Under the pieces are notes generated by a model, which saw nothing but the letters and a program-made list of their open reading frames with translations, ran no database searches and was not told the origin of the DNA. The position numbers and the translations under genes were made by a program. From Epithemia pelagica (lineage: Eukaryota > Protista > Bacillariophyta), in contig OX337241.1 in NCBI GenBank assembly GCA_946965045.2, positions 2,914,001 to 2,978,000 of the forward strand: a DNA stretch of 64,000 bases, given 5' to 3'. Positions 8,368 through 61,766 of this stretch are shown here, piece by piece; the stretch's first letter is position 1, and each line of letters opens with the position of its first letter.

Positions 8368-11289
8368 ATGGAATCACGTCAAGCTCGTGCTTTGGATTTG
8401 GAACGCCAATTGCAACGTGCCCAACAACAGTCCAAACAACACCAGAATGACCAGGCCGTCAATCGCTTGCGCGTGCCGCTGTGTGAAGTCTTGGCCGACA
8501 TGATTCTCACCCATCCGGCTCAAGCCCTCGATTACGATGTCGACAATCGCTTGTGGAAACACTGTTTTTACAGTCGCATTGTCCCCCAACGACAAGGCAT
8601 TGCCAAGGCCCACAAGAAATTGCAGCAACAGCAACAATCGTCGTCGTCTTCTGTGCAACTTTATCAACAGCAACAACAAACGGTCCAACACTTGGAACAA
8701 GCCTTGCATCAATTCTTGGCCGAAGCCGTCACCCTGTATCGCTATTTGGTCAATCATTTGCAAGCCAAATTGCTGGGACAATCGGCCACCTTTTCGCAGT
8801 CACAAGCATCGTCGGCTTCGTCGTCGCAAACCCTGTCGCAATCGCAAGACGACGACGACGAGCCTTCACCCAATGACCAACAAGAACAAGAAGAATTGAC
8901 GCCCCTCTCTCCCACTACGTGTACCGACGGCTTGGTGGAATGGATTCATCAATTGCACATTCGATTGGGTGATTTGTTTCGCTACAGTCTTCAATTGTCC
9001 CAGGCTCAACACGCCTACGAAACGGCCACCACCTTGGGACCCGGTCACGGACATGCTTGGAATCAATTGGCGGTCGTCTCACAAGTGAATACGACGAATA
9101 CGAATACCAACACGACGGCAAATACTACGACGACCAAGGGTCACCCCACGACGGCCACGCAACATTCGTCGGCCAGTGCCTTGTATTGGTATGCCCGAGC
9201 CCTCTTGGCCCAAACCGTGCCCTTTGCCACGGCACGGTCCAATCTCACGCGATTGTTTCAAGACAATCAAGAATGGCTTCAACAGCATGGTGCCACAGCG
9301 ACGACAAGCACAACCACGACATGGAGTCAACGAAGCGCTCCTCCTTCCAATAACAGTAACAACAAACAAGTCATGACGACTCGCTTATTCTTGGCCGAGT
9401 TTGTTGATTTGCATCGCTTGTTTTTTGTCGCCAAGGAATCCACGACGCTTTACAAAACCATGGAACGGGTCTTACAAGATCGATTGGCCCGCTTGCTCCA
9501 AGTCTCGGCCTTTGGCGATGCCCTCTTGTGCAAACTCATTTGCATTCAAGCCTTTTCGGAACACATTGTGAGTTCCACCACTGCCACGAGCAGCAGTCCA
9601 ACGACCACACCGGCCAAAGCCACCATTCAACCGCACCGTAAGAGTTTGACCGTCTTTGGTTGGGCGGCTCGAACTGCCACCTTTCAATTTGCCACTCAAA
9701 TGGCCGACAAGGTCTTGGCCACGGCCTTGCAAAAACAGAAGCAGCAATCGTCCAAACCGTCGGTGCGATTGTTGTTGCCACTCGTGTTGGTGACCGATCA
9801 TGTCGTGGCGTCGCCCCTGGGTTCCAGTCGTGGCAGTAACAAGAACAGTAGTAGCAGCAAGGCCCAACAACGACACGATCAAGCGGCGGTGGACTTTTGG
9901 ATGCGCATGGTACAAGTCTGGAATCATGTCTCCCAACACTTGGCCCACAATCATGACGTGGAGGAAGAACAAGCCGCCACGCCCAAGGAATATGACCAAT
10001 GGATTGGCTTTGCTCCCTTTGCCGCCTTTCTTCCTCTGGAACACGAATCGGGTTTTGTCTCCAAGGACAAGGCGATTCAATTCTTGACGACGACGACGAC
10101 GACGAACAAGCCAGCCTCCAAGAGTCTGTCGTCGCAACCAACGACCAACCCTCACGCGTGTTTGATTCGTCGCATGTTAACCGTGGCCCAACGGGTGGCC
10201 CAGACGAATCCGCACATTACCTGTACGTGGAGGACCGAGGAGGATGCGGGAATGGGTAGTCGAGGACCGCATTGGATGTGGGAGTGGCATGACGAACCGC
10301 CCACATCGCAATCGCCCGACAGGGAGCCCGAACAGGACCAAATGGCCATGATGATCATGGAGGAGGAGGAGAATGACAATCCTGGGGCGGTTCCCAGTCC
10401 ACCCACGACACTGGACGTGCTGGTCGCACCCTCGACCAAACCGCCACCGCCACAACGACAGCCACCAGCACCCGACGAACCCGTCTTGGTCTATCAAGCC
10501 GCACGTGACGAAGGAAGTCCGGCACTCTTGGTTCCAGGGGCTCTTTTGGCGACCACCACGACGACCACAACAATCGCCGCACAAACGGTATCTGCCACCA
10601 AACCCTCGAGTCGTAGTGATGCAACTCGAACACTGCCCGAAGATCCCATGATGGTGGAAATGGATCACATTTTGACGGTGCGTGACGATTCCGAAGCGCA
10701 CGACGATCAAGATATTGTACCAGCAGTCGCACCGGCGGCCAGCACTGTGGCTCCATCCCATCAGCAAAGTACCCCCACTCCACCCACCTTGCCACCTCCC
10801 GGCTTTGGTCCTCCCCCTGGATTTGCTGGAGGAGCAGCAGCGGCTCCAACCTCTGTCACCACGACGACAACTGGACTACCATCCAACCCTTTTCCAGCCG
10901 CAAATCCTGGATGGATGTGGAACAATGGAGCTTTGGCGCAACCACCACCACAACAGTCTATTGCAGCCCAGCATTCCATGACGACCGTAGGACAAGTCAT
11001 GGGTACGGTCCCCTTGCCACCTACTCACAATCCATTTGCCGTGGGACCAACAATGACGACCACAACCACGACGGGAATGCCGTGGAATACAGGTCCCCCG
11101 ACGGCCGTTGGTGGTCCCCTGTGGGTCCAACCCACCATGGGAACTGCAGATGGAACGTCGTCGTCCTCCCCCTCCTTGCTGGATTCCGGACTGTTGCAAT
11201 CCTTGTGGATGGACGAGGCATCGTCGTCATCCTCGGCCAGAGTGCCTCCCAAAACCACGACAACACAAAATCCCTTTGCCTTGTCGTAG
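8368..11289 (+). CDS. SMG7: EST1/SMG5-6-7 family (SMG7-like) nonsense-mediated decay / telomerase-associated TPR protein
   Basis: 973-aa ORF with EST1-domain motifs LWKHCFYSRI, LHIRLGDLFRYS, GHAWNQLAVVSQ and ALYWYARAL...PFATARSNL. The C-terminus is long, Pro/Thr-rich and low complexity, with no recognisable PIN domain. Confidence 0.8.
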   Translation: MESRQARALDLERQLQRAQQQSKQHQNDQAVNRLRVPLCEVLADMILTHPAQALDYDVDNRLWKHCFYSRIVPQRQGIAKAHKKLQQQQQSSSSSVQLYQQQQQTVQHLEQALHQFLAEAVTLYRYLVNHLQAKLLGQSATFSQSQASSASSSQTLSQSQDDDDEPSPNDQQEQEELTPLSPTTCTDGLVEWIHQLHIRLGDLFRYSLQLSQAQHAYETATTLGPGHGHAWNQLAVVSQVNTTNTNTNTTANTTTTKGHPTTATQHSSASALYWYARALLAQTVPFATARSNLTRLFQDNQEWLQQHGATATTSTTTTWSQRSAPPSNNSNNKQVMTTRLFLAEFVDLHRLFFVAKESTTLYKTMERVLQDRLARLLQVSAFGDALLCKLICIQAFSEHIVSSTTATSSSPTTTPAKATIQPHRKSLTVFGWAARTATFQFATQMADKVLATALQKQKQQSSKPSVRLLLPLVLVTDHVVASPLGSSRGSNKNSSSSKAQQRHDQAAVDFWMRMVQVWNHVSQHLAHNHDVEEEQAATPKEYDQWIGFAPFAAFLPLEHESGFVSKDKAIQFLTTTTTTNKPASKSLSSQPTTNPHACLIRRMLTVAQRVAQTNPHITCTWRTEEDAGMGSRGPHWMWEWHDEPPTSQSPDREPEQDQMAMMIMEEEENDNPGAVPSPPTTLDVLVAPSTKPPPPQRQPPAPDEPVLVYQAARDEGSPALLVPGALLATTTTTTTIAAQTVSATKPSSRSDATRTLPEDPMMVEMDHILTVRDDSEAHDDQDIVPAVAPAASTVAPSHQQSTPTPPTLPPPGFGPPPGFAGGAAAAPTSVTTTTTGLPSNPFPAANPGWMWNNGALAQPPPQQSIAAQHSMTTVGQVMGTVPLPPTHNPFAVGPTMTTTTTTGMPWNTGPPTAVGGPLWVQPTMGTADGTSSSSPSLLDSGLLQSLWMDEASSSSSARVPPKTTTTQNPFALS

Positions 11290-11704
11290 AACCAAGGCGA
11301 AACAAACAGTCTCCCGGAGTAATGGTGTGTGTTTCCCTGTTGTTCGGAACCAAATTTGGAACCACTCTAGTGTCGTCGCGAGAGATGAATGAATCGAAGG
11401 ACTACCCTGCATTACCATCACTACAAGGACCAGACGTGACCAACGATATGGACGTGGCAGAGTGATGCCGCCCTCCTATTCTCAACCACAACAACGGCAC
11501 TGTCCTCTTTTCTAGAAAACGAATATGACCTACACACCCTTCCATCAAACGTTAAGCCATGAGGGTCGCAGTGGAAAGGATCGGGTAGGTTAAATAGAGC
11601 CAAGCATTGCCCAACAAACAACATCGTGCTAGCCTATATCTAGATAAAATCGTCTCCTCCAAGCTATCGGAAGAATCGTCTATCGTCTCATCTCTATAGA
11701 GCTA

Positions 11705-39257: not shown

Positions 39258-40511
39258 TCTATGATGCGGTTCCTTGTCACTGCCACAAGCATGCAGTCAA
39301 TTCGAAACAACCACAACAACAACAACAACAACAACAAGACAATGATGGTGATAATGACGATGATGCCAGACAGTTGTGTTTGATTGTATCGCTTGGTTCC
39401 ATTTCATTCCAGTGTTGTGGTTTGTGGTTTCTGTCTCTGATTCGTGGTGAGCCCAACACAGATCGGTTTGTATTGCCCTCACAATTGCCTGTTTCAATGA
39501 CTGGTGGGGAGTGGGGTCCGAAGACTGAAGTTTCACACGATCACTTGTCCGTGACTGGTTGGGATAGTTGGTCGATTCGGAACCTTTTGCTGCGGATAGA
39601 CGGCCGGAAACAAGACTGAAAAGGATAACCACGAGAACTTTGATCCGAGATCCCTTGCTTGCAAAGACCACGTGATGTTGGTAGTGTTGTTGCTGGCTGC
39701 TGTCGTCCTTCATTCTCTCTTTCGCCGAGAACTCTACCAATAGGAGAGTTTGGCAGTTGGTCGGTATAGAGTCTATTTGTTTGGAACTCTGGCCGACCGC
39801 CTCTGTTTTTCTATGTGGCCCAACAAAAGTGTCAGTTGCCAATTGTCAAGATTGTGAATGTATCAGGAGGTTTTCCGGTCTGCACGGTTTCTTCTGCCAC
39901 AAAACTCTTGAAGTGAGATGCCACCACCAGACGCGGTCTGAAACTGATTCTGCAAGCTGGTCACATGTCAAACTCTCATTCTGTTTGAACTTCCCCAGCC
40001 ACCAAAATGAAGATGTTGCATTGAGACGCAATGCCTCGTTCAGTACGGGTCCCCAAAGTTGCATCCAATCCATGTCTTATTGACACTTGAGGATTTCATC
40101 AAGGCTAGAGCTCCATTCACAGAAGAGAGCTGCACCTCTCCCAGAGCTAAAATTTGGTCCCCTTGTTAGTCAACGAAGAAAATATGATGATCATGCGCCG
40201 CCTTGTCCATCTTTCTTGTTGTTGGATCTATATGAATTCGAATAATCTTTTTGGCCCAAAGATATACTATTGTCATGCATTATATGTGCGACCCACTCTT
40301 GCCCAAGATTGCGTACCTAAGACAGACACTCTGGCTCAAATGCTTCCACGCGTACGACGAGAGTATACATAGACTATCTATAGAGTAGTTCTGAAAATTT
40401 GGATCGTGTTGTTGATGTTCCATCAGTCCGCAGCCATCAGCCATCAGCATCTCAAAACTGATGCCTTTCGATGATCTCTTCATAAATTCGCTGCAGTCAT
40501 TTTGTGAAACC

Positions 40512-41702
40512 ATGGCCACGACGATGAAAGAAAAAGCATGGCAGTCGGGCCTTGTCCTGTTAGACGAGACACCTGAATGGAATTTCGAGGACTGGCCTCC
40601 TCTTGTGGGTGGATGGCGTTACTATCATGCTTCGGTCGTTCTCGATCATCCCGATAACAAGACGGAACAAACCGTCGTCGTGTTGGGCGGATATCGAACA
40701 GGTTATGGCGAGGTCAATTCCATTCTTGTATTAAATTTGGCAGACCCAGACAAGCAGTGGCGAGAGGGGCCACCAATGAACAAGAGTCGTCGAGGACATG
40801 CCGCTGTTTTGTGCAATGGCGGCGTCTACGTGATGGGAGGACGCCATCGAGATTCAATTTGGGACTGTATCGAACGCATTGATGCGAACGATATACTACA
40901 ACCATTTTTAACAGCAAGCACCACACATACGAGGAATTGGACGACATTGACATGTCGATTATCAACGCGACGGTTTGGATGTTGTGCTGTCGCGGTTCAC
41001 AACCGATATATCGTTGTAATGGGCGGCTACAACGATCATGATTTGTCGTCAGTGGATATTATAGATACAAACAACCACACTGTCACTGCGGGACCAAGCA
41101 TGAATATTCCTCGATCATATTGTGCTAGTGTGGTCATTGGTAACCGCATCTTCTCCGTTGGAGGCTACACAGGACGCTCGGTGGAGTATTTGGAATTTTC
41201 AAAGCCTGGTGACAATGAAGAGACAAAAAAGGAAACTGGCTCGACGTTCATTTCTTTCTCGTCGACCTGGACCGCTCATTCTAATATGGTGCTTTCCAAT
41301 GCACGAAGTTCTTGTGCAGTGGTTACCGTGGGATCCTGTTTGGTAGTGGCCGGAGGACTAGGCGATTCAACCGTGGACGTCTTGGATACGCACCGCAACC
41401 GTGTGTGGAATCTCCCACCATTCGGAAATCGCCGCGATTACTTCAGTATGGCGATTGTTGCCAATCATGTTGCCGTGATAAGTGGTTTTGGCAGTTCTGC
41501 CTGTGCGACATTACCACTACTGGACAAGCATACGTGGTGTTTTCGACGACTCTTGGAGCATCAGATCGACAGATGTTGTCTATTTCGGGAAGGAAGGAAT
41601 ATCCAACTTGCTGATAATTCACCCTTCTCCGCCTCGACATCAGCTCATAAACGAGCAAGGCCCGATACACGCCGTGGTGATGAAGGAAAGGATGAAACTT
41701 GA
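40512..41702 (+). CDS. Kelch-repeat beta-propeller protein K1 (6 blades)
   Basis: Six hydrophobic-GG kelch motifs (VVVLGG, VYVMGG, IVVMGG, IFSVGG, LVVAGG, VAVISG) with W/R markers. No BTB or F-box. Basic KRARP tail. Confidence 0.88.
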   Translation: MATTMKEKAWQSGLVLLDETPEWNFEDWPPLVGGWRYYHASVVLDHPDNKTEQTVVVLGGYRTGYGEVNSILVLNLADPDKQWREGPPMNKSRRGHAAVLCNGGVYVMGGRHRDSIWDCIERIDANDILQPFLTASTTHTRNWTTLTCRLSTRRFGCCAVAVHNRYIVVMGGYNDHDLSSVDIIDTNNHTVTAGPSMNIPRSYCASVVIGNRIFSVGGYTGRSVEYLEFSKPGDNEETKKETGSTFISFSSTWTAHSNMVLSNARSSCAVVTVGSCLVVAGGLGDSTVDVLDTHRNRVWNLPPFGNRRDYFSMAIVANHVAVISGFGSSACATLPLLDKHTWCFRRLLEHQIDRCCLFREGRNIQLADNSPFSASTSAHKRARPDTRRGDEGKDET

Positions 41703-44525
41703 AATTTGCAACGTATTGCATGTATGTCCTAACAATAGCGGAACTGTAGCATTATCATTTTACTCTCAAACAGTTGGTGTACTGTTTTCTTCATGGCATT
41801 GCGACCTCTTGAGATATCACATACACCTTTGTACTAGTAGAAAACGAAGGTTACACCATCCGGTATGACACCGCAAACAGGAGTGGAACCAGGCCTCGGG
41901 TAGATGTCCATGGTACCATGCCTCTCTGAAGTTAACTAGGTCGACTTATCATGCTGTGGAAAATTATGGTTGCGTGCCTGCAACACTTGGCGCAGCGACT
42001 CGTTTGGACGGTCGACCATGCGTTCAATTGTGGAGTCCGGGCTTTCTATGGCTAACGCCTACGTGAGAGGACAGTACCCCGTCTCTCGATGCTTGTGGTT
42101 TCGGGTGAGAGAACCCTTTGGAATTTTTGCCACCGAAGTGTTCGATATTTCCTCCACTACAGCAACTAGTCTTTGTGAAGTCTTTATGATGAGGTCAGCA
42201 ATTTGCTTGCGTCGATCCAGCAATCAGTCTCTCCGTAGTGGCTCGTTGACAGCCCATGGGTATCGGTCCATTGGTATCAACAAGAACAATCTCAATGCCA
42301 GTTCCGCCGAAACCTTGTTGCACGACTACAGCACTGTCAAACAGCACTGTTGGACATCAGCCACTACAATCTCTGTGCCTCGTACAGCACCAACAAAACC
42401 ACGACCCTCGCCGATCATGGCTTGGCTGTCGTCCAACAGCAGTGTTGGACCTCGATGACTACCACAGTTGAGTCTCGTACCGAACTCAGCAGTACCAACA
42501 ACAAAACCACGACGCCGATCATGTCTTGGCTGTAGTCTACGAGAGCTTGTTGTTGTTGTTTTGTTCTTCTTCTTCGTTGGATTCTGGTTGGTGTTGCTGC
42601 CTTGTCGTTCCACACCAACACCCAGCTTGAATCTTTGTATGTATGAGACTTGAAGGGCCTTTCCCATGATCAATTCTTCACTACTCCAATCGGGCGCGTC
42701 GGAAGGGAGTTGAATAGCGTTCCGTACCCAAATCCCCGTCACCGTGGTCCGACTTTGAGCATTCGTTGCAAACATGATAGCTGTCGTTATATCCTGCACT
42801 CTTTTGTCTTGGTTGAGGATCATCCTGGATGCAAGTTGTATGCCATTCGCTGTCAAGCTAGATACTTTTTTGAGCCTCCACATTTTTATGTACCTCCAAT
42901 GGGGCGACTTTGTGATCGATTCAGCAGGTCCTCATGGTATCATGTCGAGAAAGGGTCCACATAATTGGCGACCAGACTGCCATGCGGTGCCACAACACAA
43001 AGAGATTTGCGTGGTCTTGCTGTTGGGGTTGATACTGATCCACTAATAGTCGGTCAATACTGGAGGAGGATTTTCGTTCCACGAAAGACATGTGGATGAG
43101 GAAGCATACCATCGTCCTAGTGCTCTTGTTGTTGTTGTTGTTGTTGTTTGTTGCACTTGACCTCCTGTTGCGAATCGAAAGCCAAGGTACGATTTCTAGC
43201 TTGTTGCGATGAAAGTTGTCGTTGAGTATGTTCATCTTGCTAGAGTCTTCTTTAGAGTCTTTCTCGACGGGAGATGTGAGAGCAAATCACAGCAGAAAAC
43301 GCTGCCAGAAGGCGCGAAAACGACGGCGACAGACACATTGTGGATTGTGGTATCTTTTTTCGTTCGTTTCAATGGATATTCCCCCAAACTGTGATGTGGA
43401 GTCCCCCTCCCCCAAAATCTGGAGTCCCTTCCAGATCTTGGTCGCGGAATGAGGACAGGAATGGCTCGCAGGCGCGCCGACCGAGACGAACCCTGTCACT
43501 CTATCTCACAGGCGCGCCGACCGAGACGAGCAGTTCCACTCTTTCCTCTATTCGAAAAAGGAGAGGACAATTGACAATTGCTCTCGTCGCCAAGACGACC
43601 ACTCTACAATAGAACCTACTGCCACACTCCATGGGAAACCATGGAATCGTTCGTTACGAGCAATTTATGAGACTTTGCCAGTGACGAGGCATGTACGTCT
43701 CTTCTTCCTTTTCTTGGTGAAAGACTACGAAGATTGTCGCAAGGAAAAATACCAACCATATAAAGGCGCTTCGAATGAAATGGAACAAGGGAGAACAACA
43801 ACGACCATTCCACAAAAGCGGTAGCACCGAGGATGCAGAAGCGTTGACGATGCGTCATTCCTCATCCACAAAACTCCCTCTGCAAGCTTGTCTGCCTCCC
43901 CAAGACCCCACATTGATGCTGGTGGTGTACAATCGTTGTTGGTGAGACTCTCTCGATCAACCAAGTGGTCCCTCCAGTTTGTCTTCTTCGCAACAAAATC
44001 CTAACGCTATATGAGCAACAAGAAAAGAACCCGAGCGATCCACCATGGGCCAATGCAAACAGGGTGATAGCGAGGACTCTTCTGATTTACCGCATTCATC
44101 CTCAGAAAGATCAGCAATGATGGGTACATGGAATCTCGTGTTTCGTGTAAACAACATCACCATCCCATGGGTCCCTTTGTAAGAAAAGTAATTATGGTTA
44201 TCGAAAGCAGAGGCTCGACAAGTAGGATTGCAAAGAGATCCTCTTGTCATGAGCGCCCACGAAGAACGAAAAACCTATGGATATGAGAAAGAACTGGATA
44301 GGAGCCATACATATCAGTGGTCGTCTGTCTCGCCATGAGGTTTATTTCGGTATCCAAAAACTTTTATGGAACTCGAAACAAGAATGCGTGATCATCTTCA
44401 TTGCGTGGCTACGGTCACGATTTGTCTCGTGACGAAAGCTCCTACCCCTCTTTGGTCCATCCATTTCGTCAAGTCAGTCGTGCTTCCAGTCCGCACCCAT
44501 CAGAATCACAGGAGCAGAGCAAACC
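41450..44525. repeat. Segmental duplication unit (kelch 3' end + decayed minus-strand gene + spacer + kelch leader); copies at about 50990-54062 and, partly, 61540-62850
   Basis: About 42676-43240 matches 52239-52803 essentially exactly (offset 9563, identical ORF translations), and the flanks are collinear with small indels. Confidence 0.9.
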
Positions 44526-44592
44526 CTCTAACCACTAACACAATACAGTGTCTCGGTCCTCATAAATTTGCTGCTATTAATATTTTGGAGCA

Positions 44593-45813
44593 ATGAGCAC
44601 GACACTGAAAGAACAAGCATGGCAGTCGGGCCTTTTCTTATCGAAAGAGACAGCACAATGGAATGAAAATGATTGGCCTCCTCTCGAGGGTGGATGGCGC
44701 TGGCATCATGCTACGGTCGTCCTCGATCATCCCGATAAGAAGGACGACAACAACAAGGCGCAAACGGTCGTCGTGTTGGGTGGATATCAAGCAGGTCAGG
44801 GCAGTCTCGATTCCATTCTTGTATTGAACGTGGCAGCGCCGGACAAGCACTGGCGAGAAGGGCCATCAATGAACAAGAGTCGTCGAGGACATGCCGCTGT
44901 TGGGTGCAACGGAGGCGTCTACGTAATGGGAGGACGTCATCGAAATTCAATTTGGGATTGTATCGAAAGAATCGATTCCAATGATTTGCTTCGATCATCC
45001 TTAACAACCACCACCACGCAGGATAGTCATTGGACAACATTGACTTGTCGATTATCAACGGGACGGTTTGGATGTTGTGCTGCTGTGGTTCACAACCGAT
45101 ACATCGTTGTAATGGGTGGCTACAGCAATCGTTATTTGTCGTCGGTGGATTTTCTTGATACCAGGAATCACATTGTCACTGCTGGACTATCCATGACTGT
45201 TCCTCGATCTTTTTGTTCCAGTGCGGTCGTTGGCCACCGCATCTTTGTCGTTGGAGGCCATAATGAGCATGGCAATCTTGCCTCGGTGGAATATTTGGAC
45301 GACGCAACACAATGTGACAGTGTTGAGACAAAAATGGAAACTGATGGCTCGACGTTCATTTCTTTCTCACCCACCTGGACCACTCATTCGGAGCTGAGGC
45401 TTTCCAATGCACAAAGTCCTTGTGCAATGGTTCCCGTGGGATCTTGTCTGGTGGTGGCGGGAGGATGGAGAAATTCAACCGTGGAAGTTTTGGATTCGCA
45501 CCGCAACCTTGTGTGGAATCTCCCTGGACTGCAAGAAGATCGTTGGGGCTGCAGTATGGTATCTGTTGCCAATCAAGTTGCCGTGATTGGTGGATGGCGC
45601 ACTACTTCCTGTGCGACATTGCCACTAATGGATAGGAATTCGTGGTGTTTTCGTCGACTATGTGAGCACCAATCGAACGGATGGTATCATTCTCTTGAAA
45701 ATGCCGTTATCCGAAATGAAGATATCTCACCCTTCTTTACATCGACATCAACTCTTCAACGCGCAAGGTCCAATACTCACCGTGGTGATGAAGGGATGGA
45801 TGAAGCCTACTAG
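44593..45813 (+). CDS. Kelch-repeat protein K2
   Basis: 406-aa ORF, paralog of K1 (QAWQSGL...WNxxDWPPL, six GG motifs). Confidence 0.88.
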   Translation: MSTTLKEQAWQSGLFLSKETAQWNENDWPPLEGGWRWHHATVVLDHPDKKDDNNKAQTVVVLGGYQAGQGSLDSILVLNVAAPDKHWREGPSMNKSRRGHAAVGCNGGVYVMGGRHRNSIWDCIERIDSNDLLRSSLTTTTTQDSHWTTLTCRLSTGRFGCCAAVVHNRYIVVMGGYSNRYLSSVDFLDTRNHIVTAGLSMTVPRSFCSSAVVGHRIFVVGGHNEHGNLASVEYLDDATQCDSVETKMETDGSTFISFSPTWTTHSELRLSNAQSPCAMVPVGSCLVVAGGWRNSTVEVLDSHRNLVWNLPGLQEDRWGCSMVSVANQVAVIGGWRTTSCATLPLMDRNSWCFRRLCEHQSNGWYHSLENAVIRNEDISPFFTSTSTLQRARSNTHRGDEGMDEAY

Positions 45814-46069: not shown

Positions 46070-46320
46070 CATGGATCAATTATTCTGATTTGGTTCTTTC
46101 CTATCCACGATGTTCTTGTGCAGTGATTGCTGTGGGATCCGGGCTGGTCGTGGCGGGACGACGACGCAATTCAACTGTGGAAACCTTTGGATACGCACCG
46201 GACCCGCGTGTGGAATCTCCCACCCTTTGGAAATCGCCTTGAACGCTCCGCGTCAAAATCAAAATCTAAATGAAGCACGACCAATACGCACTGTATTGAA
46301 AAAGGGAAGGATAATCCTGA
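46070..46320 (+). pseudogene. Kelch gene 3' fragment
   Basis: Reads WINYSDLVLSYPRCSCAVIAVGSGLVVAGRRRNSTVE, then after a frameshift DTHRTRVWNLPPFGNR, matching blades 5-6 of K1-K5. Confidence 0.75.
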
Positions 46321-49576: not shown

Positions 49577-49974
49577 TGCAATTCACATTCGTCAACAGTC
49601 CGAATGTACCCATAGTTGGAATCCAATCCATGATGTTTTGTTTGTATTTGGGCAAAAGATGTGTGTGTGGTGTTATGTACGTACCCGACAAAAGCACTGG
49701 CTCGAAGGCTTCCACGTGTAGTACTCATAAGCCTACGTCCGATCGCACAAGAATGTAAGGATGGGTCGCGTGTCGCGTCGTTTGTGTCGTCCTTTCTGTT
49801 TTTTAACCACTGTGTCACTAATCCTCATGATTCCCCCGCTGGGGATTACAGTATATACTCTTCTTTTTCCAGTCCACACCCATCCGAGCAGCCCACTGCA
49901 ATCTATTACACAGTCATCAGTGTGCTCCTTTGATCCTCATAAATGCGCTGCGGTCAACAAAAGGAAGACTGAGC

Positions 49975-51204
49975 ATGACTCTGAAAGAACAAGCATGGCA
50001 GTCGGGCCTTTTCCTTTCAGACGAGACAGCAGAATGGAATGAAAACGATTGGCCTCCTCTTCAGGGTGGATGGCGTTATCTTCATGCTACGGTCGCACTC
50101 GATCATCTCGACAAGGAACTCCACAACGACAACAACAAGGCACAAATTGTTGTCGTGTTGGGAGGAATTCAACAACGCCGAGGCTATGTGAATTCTATTC
50201 TTTTATTGAATCTGGCAGACCCAGACAAGCAATGGCGAGAAGGGCCACCCATGAACCAGAAACGTGCTGGACATGGCGCTGTTGTGTGCAACGGAGCCGT
50301 CTACGCCATGGGAGGTCGCACAGGAGGATACCGTGATGGAGCAAATTTGGACTGCATCGAACAAATTGATGCCAACGATCTATTACAATCATCTTTAACA
50401 ACAACCAGCATCACACATGAAAGCCATTATAGAACATTGACATGTCATTTATCAACGGGCCGATGTGGATGTTGTGCTGTTGTGGTCCAAAACCGATATA
50501 TCGTTGTAGTGGGTGGCTACAACGGTCGTTATTTGCCGTCGGTGGATATTATAGATACCAGCAATGACACTGTCACTGCAGGACCAAGCATGACTGTTCC
50601 ACGACAATGGTGTGCCAGTGCGGTCATTGGCCACCGCATCTTTGTCGTTGGAGGCCATGGCGAGCATGGTTTTCTTGACACTGTGGAATATTTGGACTGT
50701 GCAACACCGTGTGACAATCATGAGACAAAAAAGGAAACTGGTTCGACATTCATTTCCTTCTCGACCACTTGGATCACTCATTCCGAGTTGAGGCTTTCCA
50801 ATGCACAAAGTTCTTGTGCAATGGTTGCCGTTGGATCTTGTCTGGTGGTGGCGGGTGGACAAGGCCATTCAACCGTGGAAGTCTTGGATACGCGCCGCAA
50901 CCGCGTTTGGAATCTCCCACCATTGGATAATCACCGCGACGACTGCAGTCTAGTGACTGTTGCCAATCAAGTTGCCGTGATAAGTGGCTGGGGAAGTCCT
51001 ACCTGTGCGACATTACCACTACTGGACAAGCATACGTGGTGTTTTCAACGACTCTTTAACCAGCAGTTCAACATATGGTGTCTATTTCGGGAAGGAAGGA
51101 ATATCCAACATGCTGATAATTCGCCTTTCCCCACCTGGACATCAGATCGTAAACGAGCAAGGCCCCACACGCACCGTGGTGATGAATGGAAGGATGGAAC
51201 TTGA
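49975..51204 (+). CDS. Kelch-repeat protein K3
   Basis: 409 aa from ATG 49975, paralog of K1 with six GG motifs. Confidence 0.88.
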   Translation: MTLKEQAWQSGLFLSDETAEWNENDWPPLQGGWRYLHATVALDHLDKELHNDNNKAQIVVVLGGIQQRRGYVNSILLLNLADPDKQWREGPPMNQKRAGHGAVVCNGAVYAMGGRTGGYRDGANLDCIEQIDANDLLQSSLTTTSITHESHYRTLTCHLSTGRCGCCAVVVQNRYIVVVGGYNGRYLPSVDIIDTSNDTVTAGPSMTVPRQWCASAVIGHRIFVVGGHGEHGFLDTVEYLDCATPCDNHETKKETGSTFISFSTTWITHSELRLSNAQSSCAMVAVGSCLVVAGGQGHSTVEVLDTRRNRVWNLPPLDNHRDDCSLVTVANQVAVISGWGSPTCATLPLLDKHTWCFQRLFNQQFNIWCLFREGRNIQHADNSPFPTWTSDRKRARPHTHRGDEWKDGT

Positions 51205-54069
51205 AATTTGCAACACATTGCATATATGTGCTATTAACATTAGCGGAACTAAAACATTATCATTTTATTCTCAAACAGTTGTTGTATTGTTTTCTTCATG
51301 GCATTGCGAACTTTAGAGATATCATGTACACCCTTGTACTAGTAGAAAACGAAAGTTACACCATCCGGCATGACACCGCAAACAGGAGTGGAGCAAGGCC
51401 TTGGGTAAAGATGCCCATGGTACCATGCCTCTCTGCTCGTGAATGAGTCAAGATACCTTGCTGTGGAAGATTATGGTTTCGTGCCTGAAACACTAAGCGC
51501 AGCGACTCGTTTGGACGGTCGTCTTCGTTCCGACCATGCGTTCAATTGTGGGTTCCGGTCCTTTGATGGCGCATGCCTGCGTGAGAGGACAGTACCCCGT
51601 CTCTCGATGCTTGTGGGTTCGGGTGACAGGGCATTTGCGAATCATCCTTTGGAATTTGTGACACCGTCGTGTGTTCGATATTTTCACCAATACAGCAACT
51701 GTACTTTATCATGAGGTCAGCAATTTGCTTGCGTCAAACCAGCAATCAGTCTCTCCGAAGTGGCTCGTTGACAGTCCACGTGGATCCACAAGAACAATCG
51801 CAGTGTGCAAAGTTATGTCTTGCCCCTCAATGCCAGTTCCGCCGAAACCTTGTTGCACGATTACAACACTGTCGATCAGCAGTGTTGGACATTGACCACT
51901 ACATCGTTTGTGCCTCCTACAACACCCACACAACCACCACACGCGCCGATCATGTCTTGGCTGTCGTCTAACAGCAGTGTTGGACCTCGGTGACTACCAC
52001 AGTTGATTCTCGTACCAAACTCAGCAGTACCAACAACAAAACCACGACCACAAATGGCGCCGATCATGTCCTGGCTGTAGTCTACTAGAACTTGTTGTTG
52101 TTGTTGTTGTTCTTTTTCTTCTTCGTTGAATTCTGGTTCGTGTTGCTGCCTTGTCGTTCCACACCAACACCCAGCTTGAATCTTTGTATGTAGACTTGAA
52201 AGGGCGATGCGACCCTTTCCCAGAATTATTTCTTCACTCTTCACTACTCCAATCGGGCGCGTCGGAAGGGAGTTGAATAGCGTTCCGTACCCAAATCCCC
52301 GTCACCGTGGTCCGACTTTGAGCATTCGTTGCAAACATGATAGCTGTCGTTATATCCTGCACTCTTTTGTCTTGGTTGAGGATCATCCTGGATGCAAGTT
52401 GTATGCCATTCGCTGTCAAGCTAGATACTTTTTTGAGCCTCCACATTTTTATGTACCTCCAATGGGGCGACTTTGTGATCGATTCAGCAGGTCCTCATGG
52501 TATCATGTCGAGAAAGGGTCCACATAATTGGCGACCAGACTGCCATGCGGTGCCACAACACAAAGAGATTTGCGTGGTCTTGCTGTTGGGGTTGATACTG
52601 ATCCACTAATAGTCGGTCAATACTGGAGGAGGATTTTCGTTCCACGAAAGACATGTGGATGAGGAAGCATACCATCGTCCTAGTGCTCTTGTTGTTGTTG
52701 TTGTTGTTGTTTGTTGCACTTGACCTCCTGTTGCGAATCGAAAGCCAAGGTACGATTTCTAGCTTGTTGCGATGAAAGTTGTCGTTGAGTATGTTCATCT
52801 TGCTAGAGTCTTCTTTAGAGTCTTTCTCGACGGGAGATGTGAGAGCAAATCACAGCAGAAAACGCTGCCAGAAGGCGCGAAAACGACGGCGACAGACACA
52901 TTGTGGATTGTGGTATCTTTTCTTGTCGTTCGTTTCAATATGAATATTCCCCCAAACTGATGTGGAGTCCTCCTCCCCCAAAATCTTGAGTCCCTTCCAG
53001 ATCTTGGTCGCGGAATGAGGACAGGAATGGCTCGCAGGCGCGCCGACCGAGACGAACCCTGTCACTCTATCTCACAGGCGCGCCGACCGAGACGAGCAGT
53101 TCCACTCTTTCCTCTATTCGAAAAAGGAGAGGACAATTGACAATTGCTCTCGTCGCCAAGACGACCACTCTACAATAGAACCTACTGCCACACTCCATGG
53201 GAAACCATGGAATCGTTCGTTACGAGCAATTTATGAGACTCTGCCAGTGACGAGACATGTACTTCTCTTCTTCCTTTTCTTGGTGAAAGACTACGAAGAT
53301 TGTCGCAAGGAAAAAGACCAACCATATAAAGGCGCTTCGAATAAAATGGAACAAGGGAGAACAACAACGACCATTCCACAAAAGCGGTAGCACCGAGGAT
53401 GCAGAAACGTTGACGATGCGTCATTCCTCATCCACAAAACTCCCTCTGCAAGCTTGTCTGCCTCCAGGGTGCTGCCCAAGACCCACATTGATGCTGGTGG
53501 TGTACAATCGTTGTTGGTGAGACTCTCTCGATCATCCAAGTGACCCCTCCAGTTGTCATCTTCCCAAAAACTCCTAACGCTACATAAGCAACAAGAAAAG
53601 AACCCGAGCGACCCACCATGGGCCAATGCAAACATGGTGATAGCGAGTCCTCTTCTGATTTACCGCATTCATCCTCAGAAAGATCAGCAATGATGGGTAC
53701 ATGGAATCTCGTGTTTCGTGTAAACAACATCACCATCCCATGGGTCCCTCTGTAAGAAGAGTAGTTGTGGTTATTGAAAGCAGAGGCTCGACAACTAAGA
53801 TTGCAAAGAGATCCTCTAGTCACGAGCGCCCACGAAGAACGAAGAATCTATGGATGCAAAACACAGGGATAGAGAGAAATAGATCGGAGCCATATACATA
53901 CCAGTGGTTCTGTGTCGTTAATTTCGGTATCCAAAAACTTCTCCGAAAAGAATGCGTGATCTGTGACAAGAACAGTCACGATATTTCTCTATCCATCGAT
54001 TTCGGCAAGTCAGTCGTGCTTCCAGTCCGCACCTATCAGAATCACAGGAGCAAAGCAAACCTGTCCCGA

Positions 54070-54106
54070 TCCTCATAAATTCTGCAGTTAGTATTTTGGA
54101 ACAACC
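54070..54106 (+). promoter_or_regulatory. Conserved kelch-type leader/core-promoter motif TC(C/T)TCATAAAT...CTGC
   Basis: The same motif lies 25-30 nt before the ATG of K1 (40477-40487), K2 (44557-44567), K3 (49934-49944) and the PLD-nuclease gene (54070-54080). Its function as a promoter is inferred. Confidence 0.55.
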
Positions 54107-54877
54107 ATGAATGACTCGAATTTGGAACTAAACACCTCTCACTGGGAATACAACGCTCAGTACGAATGTCAAGGACAGAGCGGAACGGTGTGGGCAGGAG
54201 ACGACCATTTTGTGGATCAGTCATGGCTGCTAGGCGACGGCAAACAGAGTGGTGAGATGGCTGTTACCAATGATCGCCCGACCATACTTTATACATGCAT
54301 CCGCCACCCCTCTGGCCCAAACGCAGGCAAGTCGATAGCCCATGAGAACCATCCTTTTGTGGCGCTCGTTTATTTGCTCGCCGCGGAAGAGCCGAATTCT
54401 GAAGTATTTCTATCAGCGCCATTCTTATCGGACTTTGCTGTGATATATCAGCTCTGTCATTATGCGATGCCGACAGCTTCAAATCTAAAGATATTCATTG
54501 TTCTGGGACCATCTCCCTGGAATATTGAAAGTCTGCAGAATTTTGTCGGCACGTATGAAAATCGGCGCGTCGCTGTGGCTCGCCTCCGTATCAAGTTGTA
54601 CGGCAAAGATTCGGAATTTTTCCATTCCAAAGCGGTTGTTACCAGTGCTGGAGCTATGGTTGGATCTTACAACTATACCCAAGCTTCTCGGTTGAAACAC
54701 TACGAGCATGCTGTCTTATTTGATCCATCCTTCCTCCAGTACCAAGGCTTGCGAACCGAGCTCAGCCAGTTCTGGGATTCTTTGGATGTATCGGAGGTCA
54801 GCATTCCGAAAATGGATGAGCCACAGCAACAGAAAGCCGTTAGCAACCCATACAAGAAGAAGAAAGTGCAGAAGTAA
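54107..54877 (+). CDS. Single-HxK phospholipase D-superfamily (Nuc/BfiI/Zucchini-like) putative endonuclease
   Basis: 256-aa intronless ORF with FHSKAVVTS-x5-GSYNYT-x7-YEHAVL (HxK...GSxN...E signature), an upstream EVFLSAPFLSD PLD strand motif, and a C-terminal NPYKKKK basic patch. Confidence 0.75.
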   Translation: MNDSNLELNTSHWEYNAQYECQGQSGTVWAGDDHFVDQSWLLGDGKQSGEMAVTNDRPTILYTCIRHPSGPNAGKSIAHENHPFVALVYLLAAEEPNSEVFLSAPFLSDFAVIYQLCHYAMPTASNLKIFIVLGPSPWNIESLQNFVGTYENRRVAVARLRIKLYGKDSEFFHSKAVVTSAGAMVGSYNYTQASRLKHYEHAVLFDPSFLQYQGLRTELSQFWDSLDVSEVSIPKMDEPQQQKAVSNPYKKKKVQK

Positions 54878-55127
54878 AGATCTTCTTGAGTTTGATAATC
54901 CCTGATTTCTGCGGATTTAAGCCGCGTATTGTATTCGAGCAGGTGACCTAGTTTCCAAACTGCACCACGGCACACTCGTCGACTATACAGGTTTTGGGAA
55001 CAATTGCAGTTGCCGATTGTCCTAAAATAGGTTGCGGCTTTCGCTCGTCTCAACTAGGAAGAATTAAATATCGTGGTTCAAAGTAGTGTACCATAAAGTA
55101 ACAAACAAAGACAGCATGTTGCTCTCT

Positions 55128-56437
55128 TTATGTGAATGGGCACAGGGTGTCATTCTCGACAGTTACTGAATGGTTTGAGTTCAGGGGACCTGTCATGATC
55201 CGGATTACCCAGATAGAAGATCTTGGCTCTCGGCAGCCCATGTTTTTGGGCAAAGAGAACAAGTCGTAAGACGGACTGATGGAGAGCATCTTGTGCACAA
55301 GTTTCGGGTAGAACGGCCACCAAACTTCCCTCAGACTACTGGGACAGTAGTGCTCATCGACACTCCTTTGTGAATCCAAAATTCTGTTCTCGTGGCCGCA
55401 GATCCCCACCTATGACAATGACACGGTATGGTTGTGGAGTACAACACCCAAAGGTTGGACGAGTAAGACTTGTTTCCAAGAGAGACTGCGCGGATTCGGA
55501 CCAAGGCTTGGTGTAATCGTGAAGCAGAAAGCACACTTGCGTCACGTTGACTGAAGAAAAGTATTCTGATTGCCGTCGTTGCATAGACAAGGAGATTGCT
55601 TAGATCTTGTCGGGTGCTGTCAAACTATGGACCAAGCTCCAGGCCAATAAACACCAGAGAATCGATCGAGCCACGCTCAAACTGCAATGTTGCCGCCGCT
55701 GCAGCTGCTACCAGGCTTGGATTCACAGTCGATATCCATGTTCGCGATCGGTGTTTCATGTCACAGAACACACTGGCATTGGACAAGGCCACTCTGTGAT
55801 TGTCTTGTTCCTGTTCTTGCCGTTGTACTACCACCTCTGTTTCAGAAATTGCGGAACTGGATGTTTTTGGAATAGACCCACAGGAATGCAACTCCCGAAT
55901 CTGTCAGTCACATCCTGCAATTTCCAACGGCCTCTTTTGTTGCAACGGTGTATTTTCGTCATTAGTGGTTTGACACCGGCAATTTGACATATCCTGACAC
56001 ACAAAACTCTTGTACGTTATCGACGCCAGGTGCATCGAAGCGACGACTCATCCGGTCTAGTTTTTTCCTTCTTGAACTCTTGTGGTTTTCAATCGAGATG
56101 ACAACATCACCCATTGACAAATGTAGCACCGGTCCTGACACCCACCATTGGCGAACGGAGGCCCTTGAGCCCGTGCGATATGCGTCTGCCACAATCATTG
56201 GACGACATGCGCGAGCATTACTGACAACCGGCCAAGACGGCACGACACGGATTTGGCTCTCCCATAAAGATGATGATTGATGGAGTCGGTATCAATAATG
56301 ACATAAGGGACCAACCTTTGCGGTCCAACCACAGCCACGTGACATTCTCGAAAGCGGTCCAAAGAAGACGAATGCAGGCATCTGCTGTTAATGCAACACG
56401 GGAAGCGCGTCACAATGGGTTCCTTCTGGTCCATCAT
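55128..56437 (-). pseudogene. Decayed minus-strand gene sharing the MDQKE...RFxCC N-terminus with the 58500-60090 relic
   Basis: 56380-56650 is homologous to 60000-60350. The downstream part is unique and broken by many stops. Confidence 0.35.
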
Positions 56438-56907
56438 GTCGTGGCCTTGCTTCCTTCACTATATACCCGATGCATTCAAATCATTGGATCAAGAGTCAAG
56501 AGAGGACCACTCTCTCTGTTGTTGCTGTCGTTGTGAACAGACTGTATAGGACCAAGGAAAGAATGGTGTTCCACGAATGGCGTGGGACGAGATGACTTGG
56601 AAATTAGGGATTGTCGATCTGTGGATGTTGAATTACCAATCTGTGGACCAATGTATCATTCAAAAGGACCTCTTCATCACTATATTTGGTATCTCTCGCT
56701 CTCCCTTGTTTTGTGTCGTATCATATTAATGCAGCACAAAAGATACTTTTGGGGGCTTGTCATGAAATCTATGTGCGATTGATTCCCTTCACCATCGTAC
56801 GCAGGACAGGCACAACTTTCCTACTCTCTCTCTCCTCTACACGCAACAAAGCTCGCTGTCATTTCTCGTCGACGTTGTAACAGACGTCGTTGTAAAGCGC
56901 CGTGACC

Positions 56908-58125
56908 ATGACAACGACACTGCAAAAGCAAGCATGGCAGTCGGGCCTTGTCCTGTTAGACGATGAGACACCGGAATGGAATTTCGAGGACTGGCCTTCT
57001 CTTGAGGGAGAAGGGCGTTATCGTCATGCTTCGGTCGTACTGAATCATACCGATAACAACCAAGAACAAACCGTCGTCGTGTTGGGTGGATATCGAACAG
57101 GTCAAGGCGAGCTAGATTCCATTCTTGTATTAAACTTGGCAGAATCAAACAAGCAGTGGCGCGAAGGGCCACGCATGAACCAGAAACGTGATGGACATGC
57201 CGCTGTTGTGTGCAATGGAGGCATTTACGTGATGGGAGGAGACAATGGAGGTTCAGATTTGAATTGCATGGAACGAATCGACGCCAATGATTTGCTTCGA
57301 TCATCTTTGACAACCACCACCACGCATGAGAGCAGTTGGACGGCATTGACATGTCGCTTATCAACGCATCGATTTGGATGTTGTGCTGTTGCGGTTCACA
57401 ACCGATACATCGTTGTAATGGGTGGCCATAACAACGATGGTTATTCGTCGTCGGTGGATATTATTGATACCAGCAACCACACTGTCATTGAGGGACCATC
57501 CATGACTGTTCCACGACAACTTTGTGGCAGTGCGGTGATTGGCCACCGCATCTTTGTCGTTGGAGGTTGGAACGACAATGGCCATCTTGACTCGGTGGAG
57601 TATTTGGACTATGCAACACCCCTTGACAGTGATGGGACAAAAAAGGAGACTGGCTCGACATTCATTTCTTTCTCGTCCACTTGGATCACTCATCCTGATT
57701 TGGTGCTTTCCAACCCTAGAGATTCTTGTGCAATGGTTGCCGTGGGATCTTGTCTGGTGGTGGCAGGAGAACGAGGCAATCCAACCATTGATGTCTTGGA
57801 TACGAACCGCAACCGCGTGTGGAATCTCTCACCATTCGGAAATGACCACAATCGCCGCGAAGGATGCAGTATGGTGACTGTTGCCAATCAAGTTGCCGTG
57901 ATTGGTGGATGGCGCAATCCTACCTGTGTGACATTGCCACTTATGGATAGGAATTCGTGGTGTTTTCGTCGACTTTGTGAGCAGCAATCGAACGGATGGT
58001 ATCATTCTCTTAAAGGAATAGGTATCCGAGATGCTGATATCTCACCCTTCTTGACATTGGCATCAGCACGTCAACGCGCAAGGTCCAATACTCAAAGTGG
58101 TGATGAAGGGGCCGATGAAGCCTAG
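56908..58125 (+). CDS. Kelch-repeat protein K4
   Basis: 405 aa from ATG 56908, paralog of K1-K3. Confidence 0.88.
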   Translation: MTTTLQKQAWQSGLVLLDDETPEWNFEDWPSLEGEGRYRHASVVLNHTDNNQEQTVVVLGGYRTGQGELDSILVLNLAESNKQWREGPRMNQKRDGHAAVVCNGGIYVMGGDNGGSDLNCMERIDANDLLRSSLTTTTTHESSWTALTCRLSTHRFGCCAVAVHNRYIVVMGGHNNDGYSSSVDIIDTSNHTVIEGPSMTVPRQLCGSAVIGHRIFVVGGWNDNGHLDSVEYLDYATPLDSDGTKKETGSTFISFSSTWITHPDLVLSNPRDSCAMVAVGSCLVVAGERGNPTIDVLDTNRNRVWNLSPFGNDHNRREGCSMVTVANQVAVIGGWRNPTCVTLPLMDRNSWCFRRLCEQQSNGWYHSLKGIGIRDADISPFLTLASARQRARSNTQSGDEGADEA

Positions 58126-60090: not shown

Positions 60091-60545
60091 CTTGTCGTCA
60101 GATTCTCGTTTTGGCGTAGTTGTGCATGTGGCCTTGGCTCCGTCACAAAGCAATGCCCATTCGAATCATTGGATCAAGAAGTCAAGAAGACCACTCTCTG
60201 TTGTTGTTGTTGTTGCTGTCATTGTGAACAGTCCGCATGACCACGGGAATAATGGCGCTCCAAAAAAGGCTTTGGACGAGAGATGACTTGGAAACTAGGG
60301 ATATCGACTCAGTGGATGTTGGATGTTGGATTGGCCATCTGTGGACCTCTTCATCATACGAGGACTGATCGTATCCTAAAAAACACAGCAAAAGATACTT
60401 CTTGGTACTTCTTGGGGCTTGTCATGTAATCTATGAGCGATTGACTTCCCTTCACCATCGTACGCATGACAGGCACAGCTCCGAAAAGCCCGCGTTGCTC
60501 AAAGCTGTCATTTCTCGTCGACGTTGTTGTAAAGCGCCGTTGACC

Positions 60546-61766
60546 ATGACAACGCCACTGAACGAACAAGCATGGCAGTCGGGCCTTGTCCTGTTAGACG
60601 AGACACCTGAATGGAATACTGACGATTGTCCTCCTCTTGAGGGTGGATGGCGCATACATCATGCTTCGGTCGTACTCGATCATCTCGATACGGAAAACGA
60701 TAGCAACAACAGGGGGCAGACGGTCGTCGTGTTGGGAGGATATCAACAAGGCCAAGGTATCACGGATTCAGTTCTTGTATTGAATCTAGTAGACTCTAAC
60801 AAGCAGTGGCGAGAAGGGCCATCCATGAACAAGAAACGTTCTGGACATGCCGCAGTTGTGTGCAATGGCGGCGTCTACGTCATGGGTGGGAGCAATGCAG
60901 GTTCAAGTTTTGATCATATCGAACAAATTGATTCCAATGATTTGCTGCATTCATCTACAACCAAAAGCAACACACATGAGAGTCATTGGACGACATTGAC
61001 ATGTCGTTTATCAGTGGAACGATTTGGATGTTGTGCTGTTGCGGTTCACAACCGATACATCGTTGTAATGGGTGGCCATAACAACGATGGTTATTCGTCG
61101 TCGGTGGATATTATAGATACAAACAATTACACTGTCACTGCGGGGCCAAGCATGACTGTTCCACGACGAGGGTGTTCCAGTGCGGTCATTGGACACCGCA
61201 TCTTTGTCGTTGGAGGCCGTAATGAACATGGCTATGTTGACTCGCTGGAGTATTTGGACTTCGAAAGGCCATGTGAAAGTGATGAGACAGAAAAGGAAAC
61301 TGGCTCGACGTTCATTTCTTTCTCACCCACCTGGACCACCCATTCGGAATTGATGCTTTCAAATGGACGAAGTTCTTGTGCAGTGGTTACCGTGGGATCT
61401 TGTCTGGTGGTGGTGGGAGGACGAGGCAATTTACGTGTGGAAGTCTTCGATACACACCACAACCGCGTGTGGAATCTCCCACCATTCGGAAATTACCGTG
61501 AGGACTGCAGTACGGTGACTGTTGCCAATAAGGTTGCCGTGATAAGTGGCTGGGGAAGTCCTACCTGTGCGACATTACCACTACTGGACAAGCATACGTG
61601 GTGTTTTCGACGACTCTATGAGCAGCAGATCGACATATGGTGTCTATTTCGGAAAGGAAGGAATATCCAACATGCTGATAATTCGCGTTTCCCCACCTGG
61701 ACATCAGATCGTAAACGAGCAAGGCCCCACACGCACCGTGGTGATGAAGGGAAGGATGGAACTTGA
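60546..61766 (+). CDS. Kelch-repeat protein K5
   Basis: 406 aa from ATG 60546, paralog of K1-K4. Confidence 0.88.
   Translation: MTTPLNEQAWQSGLVLLDETPEWNTDDCPPLEGGWRIHHASVVLDHLDTENDSNNRGQTVVVLGGYQQGQGITDSVLVLNLVDSNKQWREGPSMNKKRSGHAAVVCNGGVYVMGGSNAGSSFDHIEQIDSNDLLHSSTTKSNTHESHWTTLTCRLSVERFGCCAVAVHNRYIVVMGGHNNDGYSSSVDIIDTNNYTVTAGPSMTVPRRGCSSAVIGHRIFVVGGRNEHGYVDSLEYLDFERPCESDETEKETGSTFISFSPTWTTHSELMLSNGRSSCAVVTVGSCLVVVGGRGNLRVEVFDTHHNRVWNLPPFGNYREDCSTVTVANKVAVISGWGSPTCATLPLLDKHTWCFRRLYEQQIDIWCLFRKGRNIQHADNSRFPTWTSDRKRARPHTHRGDEGKDGT

Follow-up and report, generated by a model that had tools for sequence, protein, structure and literature searches.

A phospholipase D-family gene behind a Kelch promoter region in a diatom chromosome-end array: an open-reading-frame-sized graft, probably amplified passively and now eroding

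The 64,000-nucleotide stretch of the diatom Epithemia pelagica analyzed here (contig OX337241.1, positions 2,914,001 to 2,978,000 of the forward strand; hereafter the window, on the contig called C17) raises the question of how an intact open reading frame (ORF) of the phospholipase D (PLD) superfamily came to occupy the fourth slot of a head-to-tail row of Kelch genes, K1 to K5. A first-pass annotation had proposed that a nuclease gene was captured into the array, stands behind Kelch regulatory DNA, and may form a recognition and effector module with its Kelch neighbors. The reading that we favor, with a probability of roughly 0.6, is that the gene is a chimera produced by one ORF-sized graft, passively amplified with the array and now eroding, and that the window copy may still work. 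According to this reading, the Kelch coding region in one chromosome-end array unit would have given way to the coding sequence of a PLD-family gene conserved in diatoms, which inherited a Kelch core promoter of the type termed class A below, a leader of ~31 nucleotides (nt) and ~2.8 kb of upstream spacer. Segmental duplication and conversion between chromosome ends would then have carried the graft passively to at least nine places on contigs C17, C9 and C6. Most copies would have decayed under relaxed constraint, and the window copy, one of the three that are open, would be transcribed from a Kelch-type start near 54076. The link between PLD and Kelch genes is, we infer, positional and not functional. 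The elements of the locus on which the argument rests are as follows.

41450 to 44592, forward strand: copy 1 of a duplicated block, upstream of Kelch K2.
50990 to 54094, forward strand: copy 2 of the block, a Kelch tail and the spacer between Kelch genes, which now lies upstream of the PLD ORF.
54023 to 54038, forward strand: distal box CAGTCCGCACCTATCA of the class-A Kelch upstream signature.
54070 to 54080, forward strand: proximal box TCCTCATAAAT, with TCATA at 54073 to 54077, 34 nt before the ATG.
54095 to 54106, forward strand: 5′ graft junction, with homology to the Kelch leader through TTTGGAAC.
54107 to 54877, forward strand: the intact PLD ORF, 256 amino acids and a stop, with the PLD domain at about residues 54 to 233.
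54878 to 55010, forward strand: 3′ flank found exclusively beside PLD copies; homology to relatives stops at 54883 to 54899.
55011 to 56470, forward strand: ordinary array spacer modules.

The first line of evidence is the duplicated DNA itself. The ~3-kb duplication reported earlier is real: 41450 to 44592 recurs at 50990 to 54106 with 80–100% identity, and a repeat search pairs 41.2–44.5 kb with 50.7–54.1 kb in many segments of 83–100% identity. Because the block begins within the 3′ ends of K1 and K3, the copied unit is a Kelch tail together with the spacer that follows it, which refines the original description. Both the alignment and the raw sequence place the strings quoted in that description, AAGTCAGTCGTGCTTCCAGTCCGCACC.ATCAGAATCACAGGAGCA and the leader TCCTCATAAAT...TATTTTGGA, in both copies. 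After ..TATTTTGGA, copy 1 reads GCAATG into K2, while copy 2 reads ACAACCATG into the 256-residue ORF at 54107 to 54877, which, as had been stated, is unrelated to Kelch. In a global alignment, the two copies are 80–88% identical over the first half, then 99–100% identical over ~1 kb, and 93–94% identical from there to the leader. The ~1-kb tract (42672 to 43664 versus 52233 to 53230), nearly identical within spacer copies that otherwise match at 80–94%, looks like a recent gene conversion between array units; no ORF and no known element were identified in either copy of it.

The second line of evidence is the nature of the sequence immediately before the ORF. Two types of leader, classes A and B, recur before divergent Kelch genes (65–75% amino-acid identity). 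Class A is defined by CAGTCC(G/A)CA..ATCA at ~80–106 nt and by TC(C/T)(C/T)CATAAAT at ~35 nt before the ATG, and the leader of the PLD ORF is of this class, with its boxes at 54023 and 54070. When the genome (60.5 Mb in 23 contigs) was searched for the two-box pattern, 56 matches were found, nearly all in array regions, against none for a reversed-pattern control; the joining of PLD and Kelch sequence is therefore not a chance resemblance. Nine of these signatures precede PLD copies; the other 47 do not, and at the loci that were read they precede Kelch genes. Thus, the shared block and the class-A leader bear out the proposal that the PLD ORF stands behind Kelch-derived upstream DNA. An initiator (Inr)-like consensus, TCAH(+1)W, has been proposed for diatoms and was reported 26–61 nt upstream of start codons (PMC4686930). 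The TCATA of the proximal box matches it, which points to a PLD transcription start near 54076 and a putative 5′ untranslated region of ~31 nt of Kelch derivation. It should be noted that both leader classes hold a TCAHW motif at a fixed distance from the ATG (40400–40512, 44470–44592, 49860–49969, 56790–56908 and 60430–60546 in the window; loci L011–L021 elsewhere), which suggests two promoter subfamilies within one Kelch array.

Both borders of the graft can be placed. The breakpoint had been assigned to within a few nucleotides of the ATG, and indeed Kelch homology ends 5–12 nt before the ATG at 54107, whereas homology to the native PLD genes of relatives begins at 54102 (..CAACC ATG), with an AAC microhomology at the joint. 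On the other side, the point at which homology to the relatives stops confines the 3′ breakpoint to 54878–55010. From 55011 onward, the window matches, at 70% identity, the DNA that follows a Kelch gene in an internal array of contig C16, and the next Kelch gene has the common class-B upstream region at 55994 to 56442. As read from these alignments, the insert consists of the ORF with at most ~12 nt of 5′ flank and at most ~130 nt of 3′ flank. C16 was considered as the source locus and rejected, the 70% match at C16:2.507 Mb being array spacer of an internal Kelch array and no home of a PLD gene. Retroposition was likewise set aside, as there is neither a poly(A) remnant or A-run at 54878–55020 nor a flanking direct repeat; the intronless state of the ORF is uninformative in this respect, since the parent gene has no intron.

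The third line of evidence comes from relatives that lack the graft. The 26 homologues found are all from diatom-type sources, namely MMETSP transcripts, a metagenome-assembled genome of the Bacillariaceae, and marine metagenomes; the MMETSP transcripts indicate that members of the family are expressed in other diatoms. The close environmental relatives (L026, which equals Tara scaffold L044, and L042, L045 and L046) are 88–90% identical at the nucleotide level. Four environmental contigs align to the window solely from 54102 to 54883–54899, and the environmental relatives share a 5′ flank of their own, ..GCAGAAGCAA(C/G)CATG, without the Kelch leader; thus, the ORF alone was grafted. Missing flank homology proves little in itself, because the relatives also lose alignability with one another ~25–30 nt upstream of the ATG, and the case for a graft rests mainly on the clearly Kelch-type region upstream of the ORF in the window.

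More distant members of the family agree with the earlier proposal that the gene was captured, since they, like the close relatives, carry no Kelch flank. In the protein tree, the paralogues fall into about seven old clades. All but one of these have a non-array member here; the exception is the clade of the array copies, for which no non-array member was found in this genome. The array clade is sister to P0002, and the two together form the sister group of P0003–P0006. The orthologues P0003 and P0006, at 53–56% identity, lie in housekeeping neighborhoods, P0003 among biotin-lipoyl and PC-esterase genes and P0006 among genes for Cwc15, XPG/FEN1 and Rpb8; on the two orthologue contigs that were checked (L022 and L027), no Kelch gene was detected. 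In this genome, then, an otherwise ordinary gene is represented by the array copies alone. On the metagenomic diatom contig L022, the PLD orthologue stands (9259–11654) between two ORFs that both match Biotin_lipoyl, and may be nested in an intron of that gene.

The fourth line of evidence is the spread of the graft. PLD copies (n = 9) lie in Kelch slots, co-oriented with the Kelch genes, on C17, C9 and C6. The junction ..TGGAACAACCATG is identical in all seven copies that were read; hence, one event was followed by spread to the three contigs. A nucleotide tree agrees: the environmental relatives group together with a support of 1.0, and none of the array copies falls among them. Three of the nine copies are open; each of the rest is disrupted by a stop, a frameshift, a 6.2-kb interruption or a deletion.

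C17 (the window): open.
C9:3351321: open, with 2 nt differences from the window copy.
C9:3375711: open, with R66C, F84S and V85G.
C6:320310 (L004): TGA at codon 125.
C9:3413426: frameshift near codon 156.
C6:121208 and C6:133504: in each, ~6.2 kb of inserted DNA follow about nt 535; the two stand in tandem at a distance of 12.3 kb (C6:112000–141999, L019–L021).
C9:3524770 and C6:196303: only the first 151 nt kept, followed by downstream spacer.

In the two deletion derivatives (C9:3524770–3525943 and C6:195285–196458; L039 and L040), the retained 151 nt are 100% identical to the window, and the deletion joins spacer at the equivalent of about window position 55446, and two chromosomes share this deletion. 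In a second assembly, there are six different open versions of 256 residues, whose catalytic half is nearly invariant. One of the proteins of that assembly, P0037, is an open 256-residue version of C6:320310 without the stop at codon 125; the inactivation of that copy is therefore recent or polymorphic.

As for the encoded protein, several comparisons place it in the PLD superfamily. The Pfam profile PLDc_2 (PF13091) matches with E 4.6e-5 and 23.7 bits, below the gathering cut-off of 27, and many homologues hold a precomputed match to the same profile. An AlphaFold 2 model has a mean predicted local distance difference test (pLDDT) score of 85. Foldseek relates this model, with probability 1.00, to the FAM83 DUF1669 domain, Nuc, Zucchini, SauUSI and PLD3/4, and VIA-align of model residues 54–233 gives Z scores of 15.7 for FAM83A, 14.6 for Nuc, 14.2 for NucT, 13.2 for Zucchini and 11.5 for BfiI. 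PLDc_2 stands on every row among the matches listed in an Atlas structure search, and a profile search of solved structures weakly ranks Nuc first and Zucchini second (E 0.04–0.1). Model, fold matches and profile matches thus agree with the original assignment to a single-HKD PLD fold of the Nuc/Zucchini size class.

The catalytic motif had also been read correctly, as H173-x-K175 ... G186-S187-x-N189 ... E200. In a 21-sequence family alignment, H173, G186, S187 and E200 are invariant, while at least 90% of the sequences keep K175 and N189. Compared with HxK(x)4D(x)6GSxN, the position of the Asp is taken by Ser180, a site that differs among family members (S/T/P/D), and the spacer has one residue fewer. 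All 27 family-invariant residues, the HKD set included, are intact in the window copy. Single-HKD enzymes were expected to dimerize, and a homodimer is indeed predicted: ipSAE, the interface score, is 0.68, compared with 0.00 for the best of three controls. Of 30 proteins solved as homodimers, 21 reached this mark, as did none of 23 solved as single chains; similar dimers have already been solved, however, and part of the score may reflect the model's memory of those structures. At least 75% of the contacts agree between runs, with partner pLDDT of at least 68. The predicted interface passes through the motif (H173–E200′, K175–S187′ and S187–S187′), as expected for a composite HKD site.

Outside the PLD domain, residues 1–53 form a family-specific N-terminal extension, whose first 30 residues contain four acidic residues and no basic one. 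The C-terminal tail, NPYKKKKVQK, is basic (7 Lys/Arg in 23 residues), and its NPY-K is kept across the family; it would possibly direct the protein to the nucleus. No hydrophobic segment was found in the protein (maximum 19-residue hydropathy 1.27), nor a signal peptide. The window copy thus probably still encodes a soluble, homodimeric HKD phosphodiesterase, most likely a nuclease.

Several known systems are close to the diatom gene. Nuc (Salmonella, 1byr) and NucT (Helicobacter) are single-HKD endonucleases that, like the diatom protein, have one HKD per chain and a core of ~150–180 residues. The likeness to Nuc extends over 150 of 152 residues (Z 14.6, root-mean-square deviation 2.7 Å) and to the symmetric predicted dimer with H, K, S, N and E at its interface. 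In contrast to Nuc, to which it is only ~12% identical, the diatom protein has the conserved 53-residue extension and the basic tail, no signal peptide, Ser, Thr or Pro in place of the motif Asp, and a motif shorter by one residue. Zucchini/PLD6/MitoPLD (4ggj, 4gel) shares the single-HKD PLD fold in eukaryotes (Z 13.2, second-best profile match); however, the diatom protein lacks the N-terminal mitochondrial outer-membrane anchor, no link to small-RNA pathways was seen, and it is not an orthologue. The top structural matches are FAM83 DUF1669 domains (4urj, 5lzk; Z 15.3–15.7). FAM83 domains are non-catalytic scaffolds that bind CK1 and lack the catalytic HKD residues, whereas the diatom family keeps its catalytic His, Lys, Asn and Glu invariant or nearly so (21 members).

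The fifth line of evidence concerns constraint. The ratio of nonsynonymous to synonymous substitution rates (dN/dS), calculated from few substitutions (2–34 per pair), is 0.98–1.08 among array copies, 0.43–0.58 between array copies and relatives, and 0.20–0.45 among relatives. For the catalytic core alone, it is 0.99 in the pair WIN-C6 and, from very few sites, 0.15 in the pair WIN-C9b. Array copies other than that of the window are altered at invariant sites, for example R66 and V85. Small as the counts are, the pattern is one of relaxed constraint after capture and amplification rather than of a conserved module.

The same pattern invites a more radical interpretation, namely that all array copies, that of the window included, are relics without a function, whose frames stay open merely because the duplication was recent. 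A dN/dS of ~1 among the copies is what such relics would show. The open copies differ by at most 1.2% of nucleotides, so that openness is expected by chance; conserved sites are altered in every copy; and the absence of the C6 stop from the matching protein of the other assembly means that inactivation is ongoing. This interpretation would, however, leave unexplained why the 27 family-invariant residues have all survived in the window copy and why the WIN-C9b core, at very few sites, gives 0.15. It would also imply that the clade is lost in this genome, although relatives keep it at a dN/dS of 0.2–0.45. For these reasons, we regard it as rather unlikely, and prefer an eroding family in which the window copy may still function.

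The proposal that the Kelch and nuclease genes form a functional module has points in its favor. In such a system, resembling immunity or silencing, the PLD nuclease would be a co-opted effector, expressed together with the hypervariable Kelch binders and kept by selection. The graft preserved the Kelch core promoter, leader and 2.8-kb spacer exactly, an array copy may be needed in a genome without another member of its clade, and the six open versions in the second assembly keep their catalytic half nearly unchanged. There are also weak matches to the bacterial defense PLD proteins DrmC and DpdK, which amount to generic PLD-motif similarity (E 1e-4 to 1e-3; NCBIfam, PADLOC). Nevertheless, six of the nine copies in this genome are broken, dN/dS is ~1 among the array copies and 0.99 even in the WIN-C6 catalytic core, and the family predates the Kelch arrays and is independent of them; its orthologues and six older paralogue clades have no Kelch neighbor. 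We therefore do not favor the module, which we consider improbable; at least as doubtful is its more specific form, in which selection favored a graft placing a dimeric PLD nuclease on the promoter of one subclass of Kelch binders, as a co-expressed effector of a eukaryotic immune-like system.

That the junction is merely a mis-join made during assembly of a highly repetitive region, for which it could be said that none of the listed read contigs by itself covers the whole stretch, is scarcely credible, because the junction recurs among nine copies (seven read) with graded divergence on three contigs, proteins of the cluster lie on long contigs of another assembly, and a 495-nt contig from the public run X4 crosses it (54057–54551, 3 differences). 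This last contig says nothing on transcription. A joint of 54088 to 56914 seen in X4 contigs was considered as a splice and rejected; the simplest account of it is a paralogous Kelch unit whose leader is similar.

Several points weigh against the passively amplified and eroding graft that we favor. The dN/dS contrast depends on the small numbers of substitutions given above. The window copy carries the derived changes G33D, A94E and D114Y at sites conserved in 92–96% of the family, and may therefore already be impaired. The ORF-precise swap, with the leader intact and several open copies in a second assembly, could also reflect selection for expression from the Kelch promoter. The ends of the insert carry neither a poly(A) tract nor a target-site duplication that would point to a mechanism of capture. 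The ancestral empty site was not found when the matches to a relative's neighboring genes were checked: that relative's PLD gene adjoins an adenylate-kinase-like gene and a second gene, whose matches here (72% and 36% identical) both lie on contig C7, ~770 kb apart, and no empty site can be defined because neither adjoins a PLD relic. Finally, none of the four sequencing runs that contain the stretch is on record as RNA (all four are listed with kind unknown), and among them no transcript of any copy was found. The contigs from these runs cover the region but are short and give neither strand, start nor level.

Chimeric genes that arise by promoter capture, and passenger genes amplified in subtelomeric or tandem multigene families, are a general phenomenon. 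The present case resembles them in the placement of a foreign ORF behind a resident promoter, its multiplication by ectopic recombination between chromosome ends, and its birth-and-death decay. It differs from the usual examples in that the swap is ORF-precise on both sides and took place within an array of stand-alone Kelch propellers. What is new here is the intact copy, both breakpoints, the graft-free relatives, the family tree, the census of copies and the dN/dS contrast. In our opinion, the locus is significant as a clean natural ORF-for-ORF swap, in which a conserved enzyme gene was rewired to the promoter of a huge, fast-turnover family, and as a case of chromosome-end arrays multiplying and then eroding a passenger gene. 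With one promoter before two unrelated ORFs, it offers a concrete handle on the class-A Kelch promoter. It also draws attention to an uncharacterized single-HKD PLD family, so far seen only in diatom-like sources, with ~seven old paralogue clades. Should the nuclease prove to share its regulation with the Kelch repertoire, this would be relevant to the question of whether such arrays form an immune-like system.

The array into which the graft was placed has its inner boundary within the window. Ordinary genes fill the window up to ~40 kb, among them genes for a lycopene cyclase, an EST1-like protein, a copine, two subtilases and a reprolysin-like peptidase; positions 1–40400 are thus ordinary, and the Kelch units of the C17 chromosome-end array occupy 40460–64000. 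The Kelch genes of the row are as follows.

About 40512 to 41702: Kelch K1.
44593 to 45813, forward strand: Kelch K2, 406 amino acids, behind copy 1 of the block, with its ATG at 44593.
49969 to 51204, forward strand: Kelch K3, which precedes the PLD slot; its first ATG is two codons inside the conserved start.
56908 to 58125, forward strand: Kelch K4, which follows the PLD slot and has a class-B leader.
About 60546 to 61766: Kelch K5.

Kelch genes of this type number in the hundreds genome-wide: a first look yielded 945 candidates, of which more than 100 were scored at 67–81% identity. They crowd contig ends, for example at 3.19–3.58 Mb of the 3.60-Mb contig C9 and at 0.03–0.39 Mb of C6. A search of the literature on diatom Kelch arrays did not find an array of hundreds of stand-alone Kelch propeller genes described. 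The array at C16:2504000–2511000 (L041) lies ~0.7 Mb from the end of a 3.23-Mb contig; therefore, not every Kelch array is terminal. The same locus also has a divergent, Ser/Thr-rich ORF of 429 residues with weak DNA similarity to the Kelch genes of the window. Within the window, the long spacer between K2 and K3 was checked for ORFs, and none was convincing; it holds an isolated Kelch fragment of ~160 nt (46072–46234) that is 79–81% identical to internal Kelch sequence.

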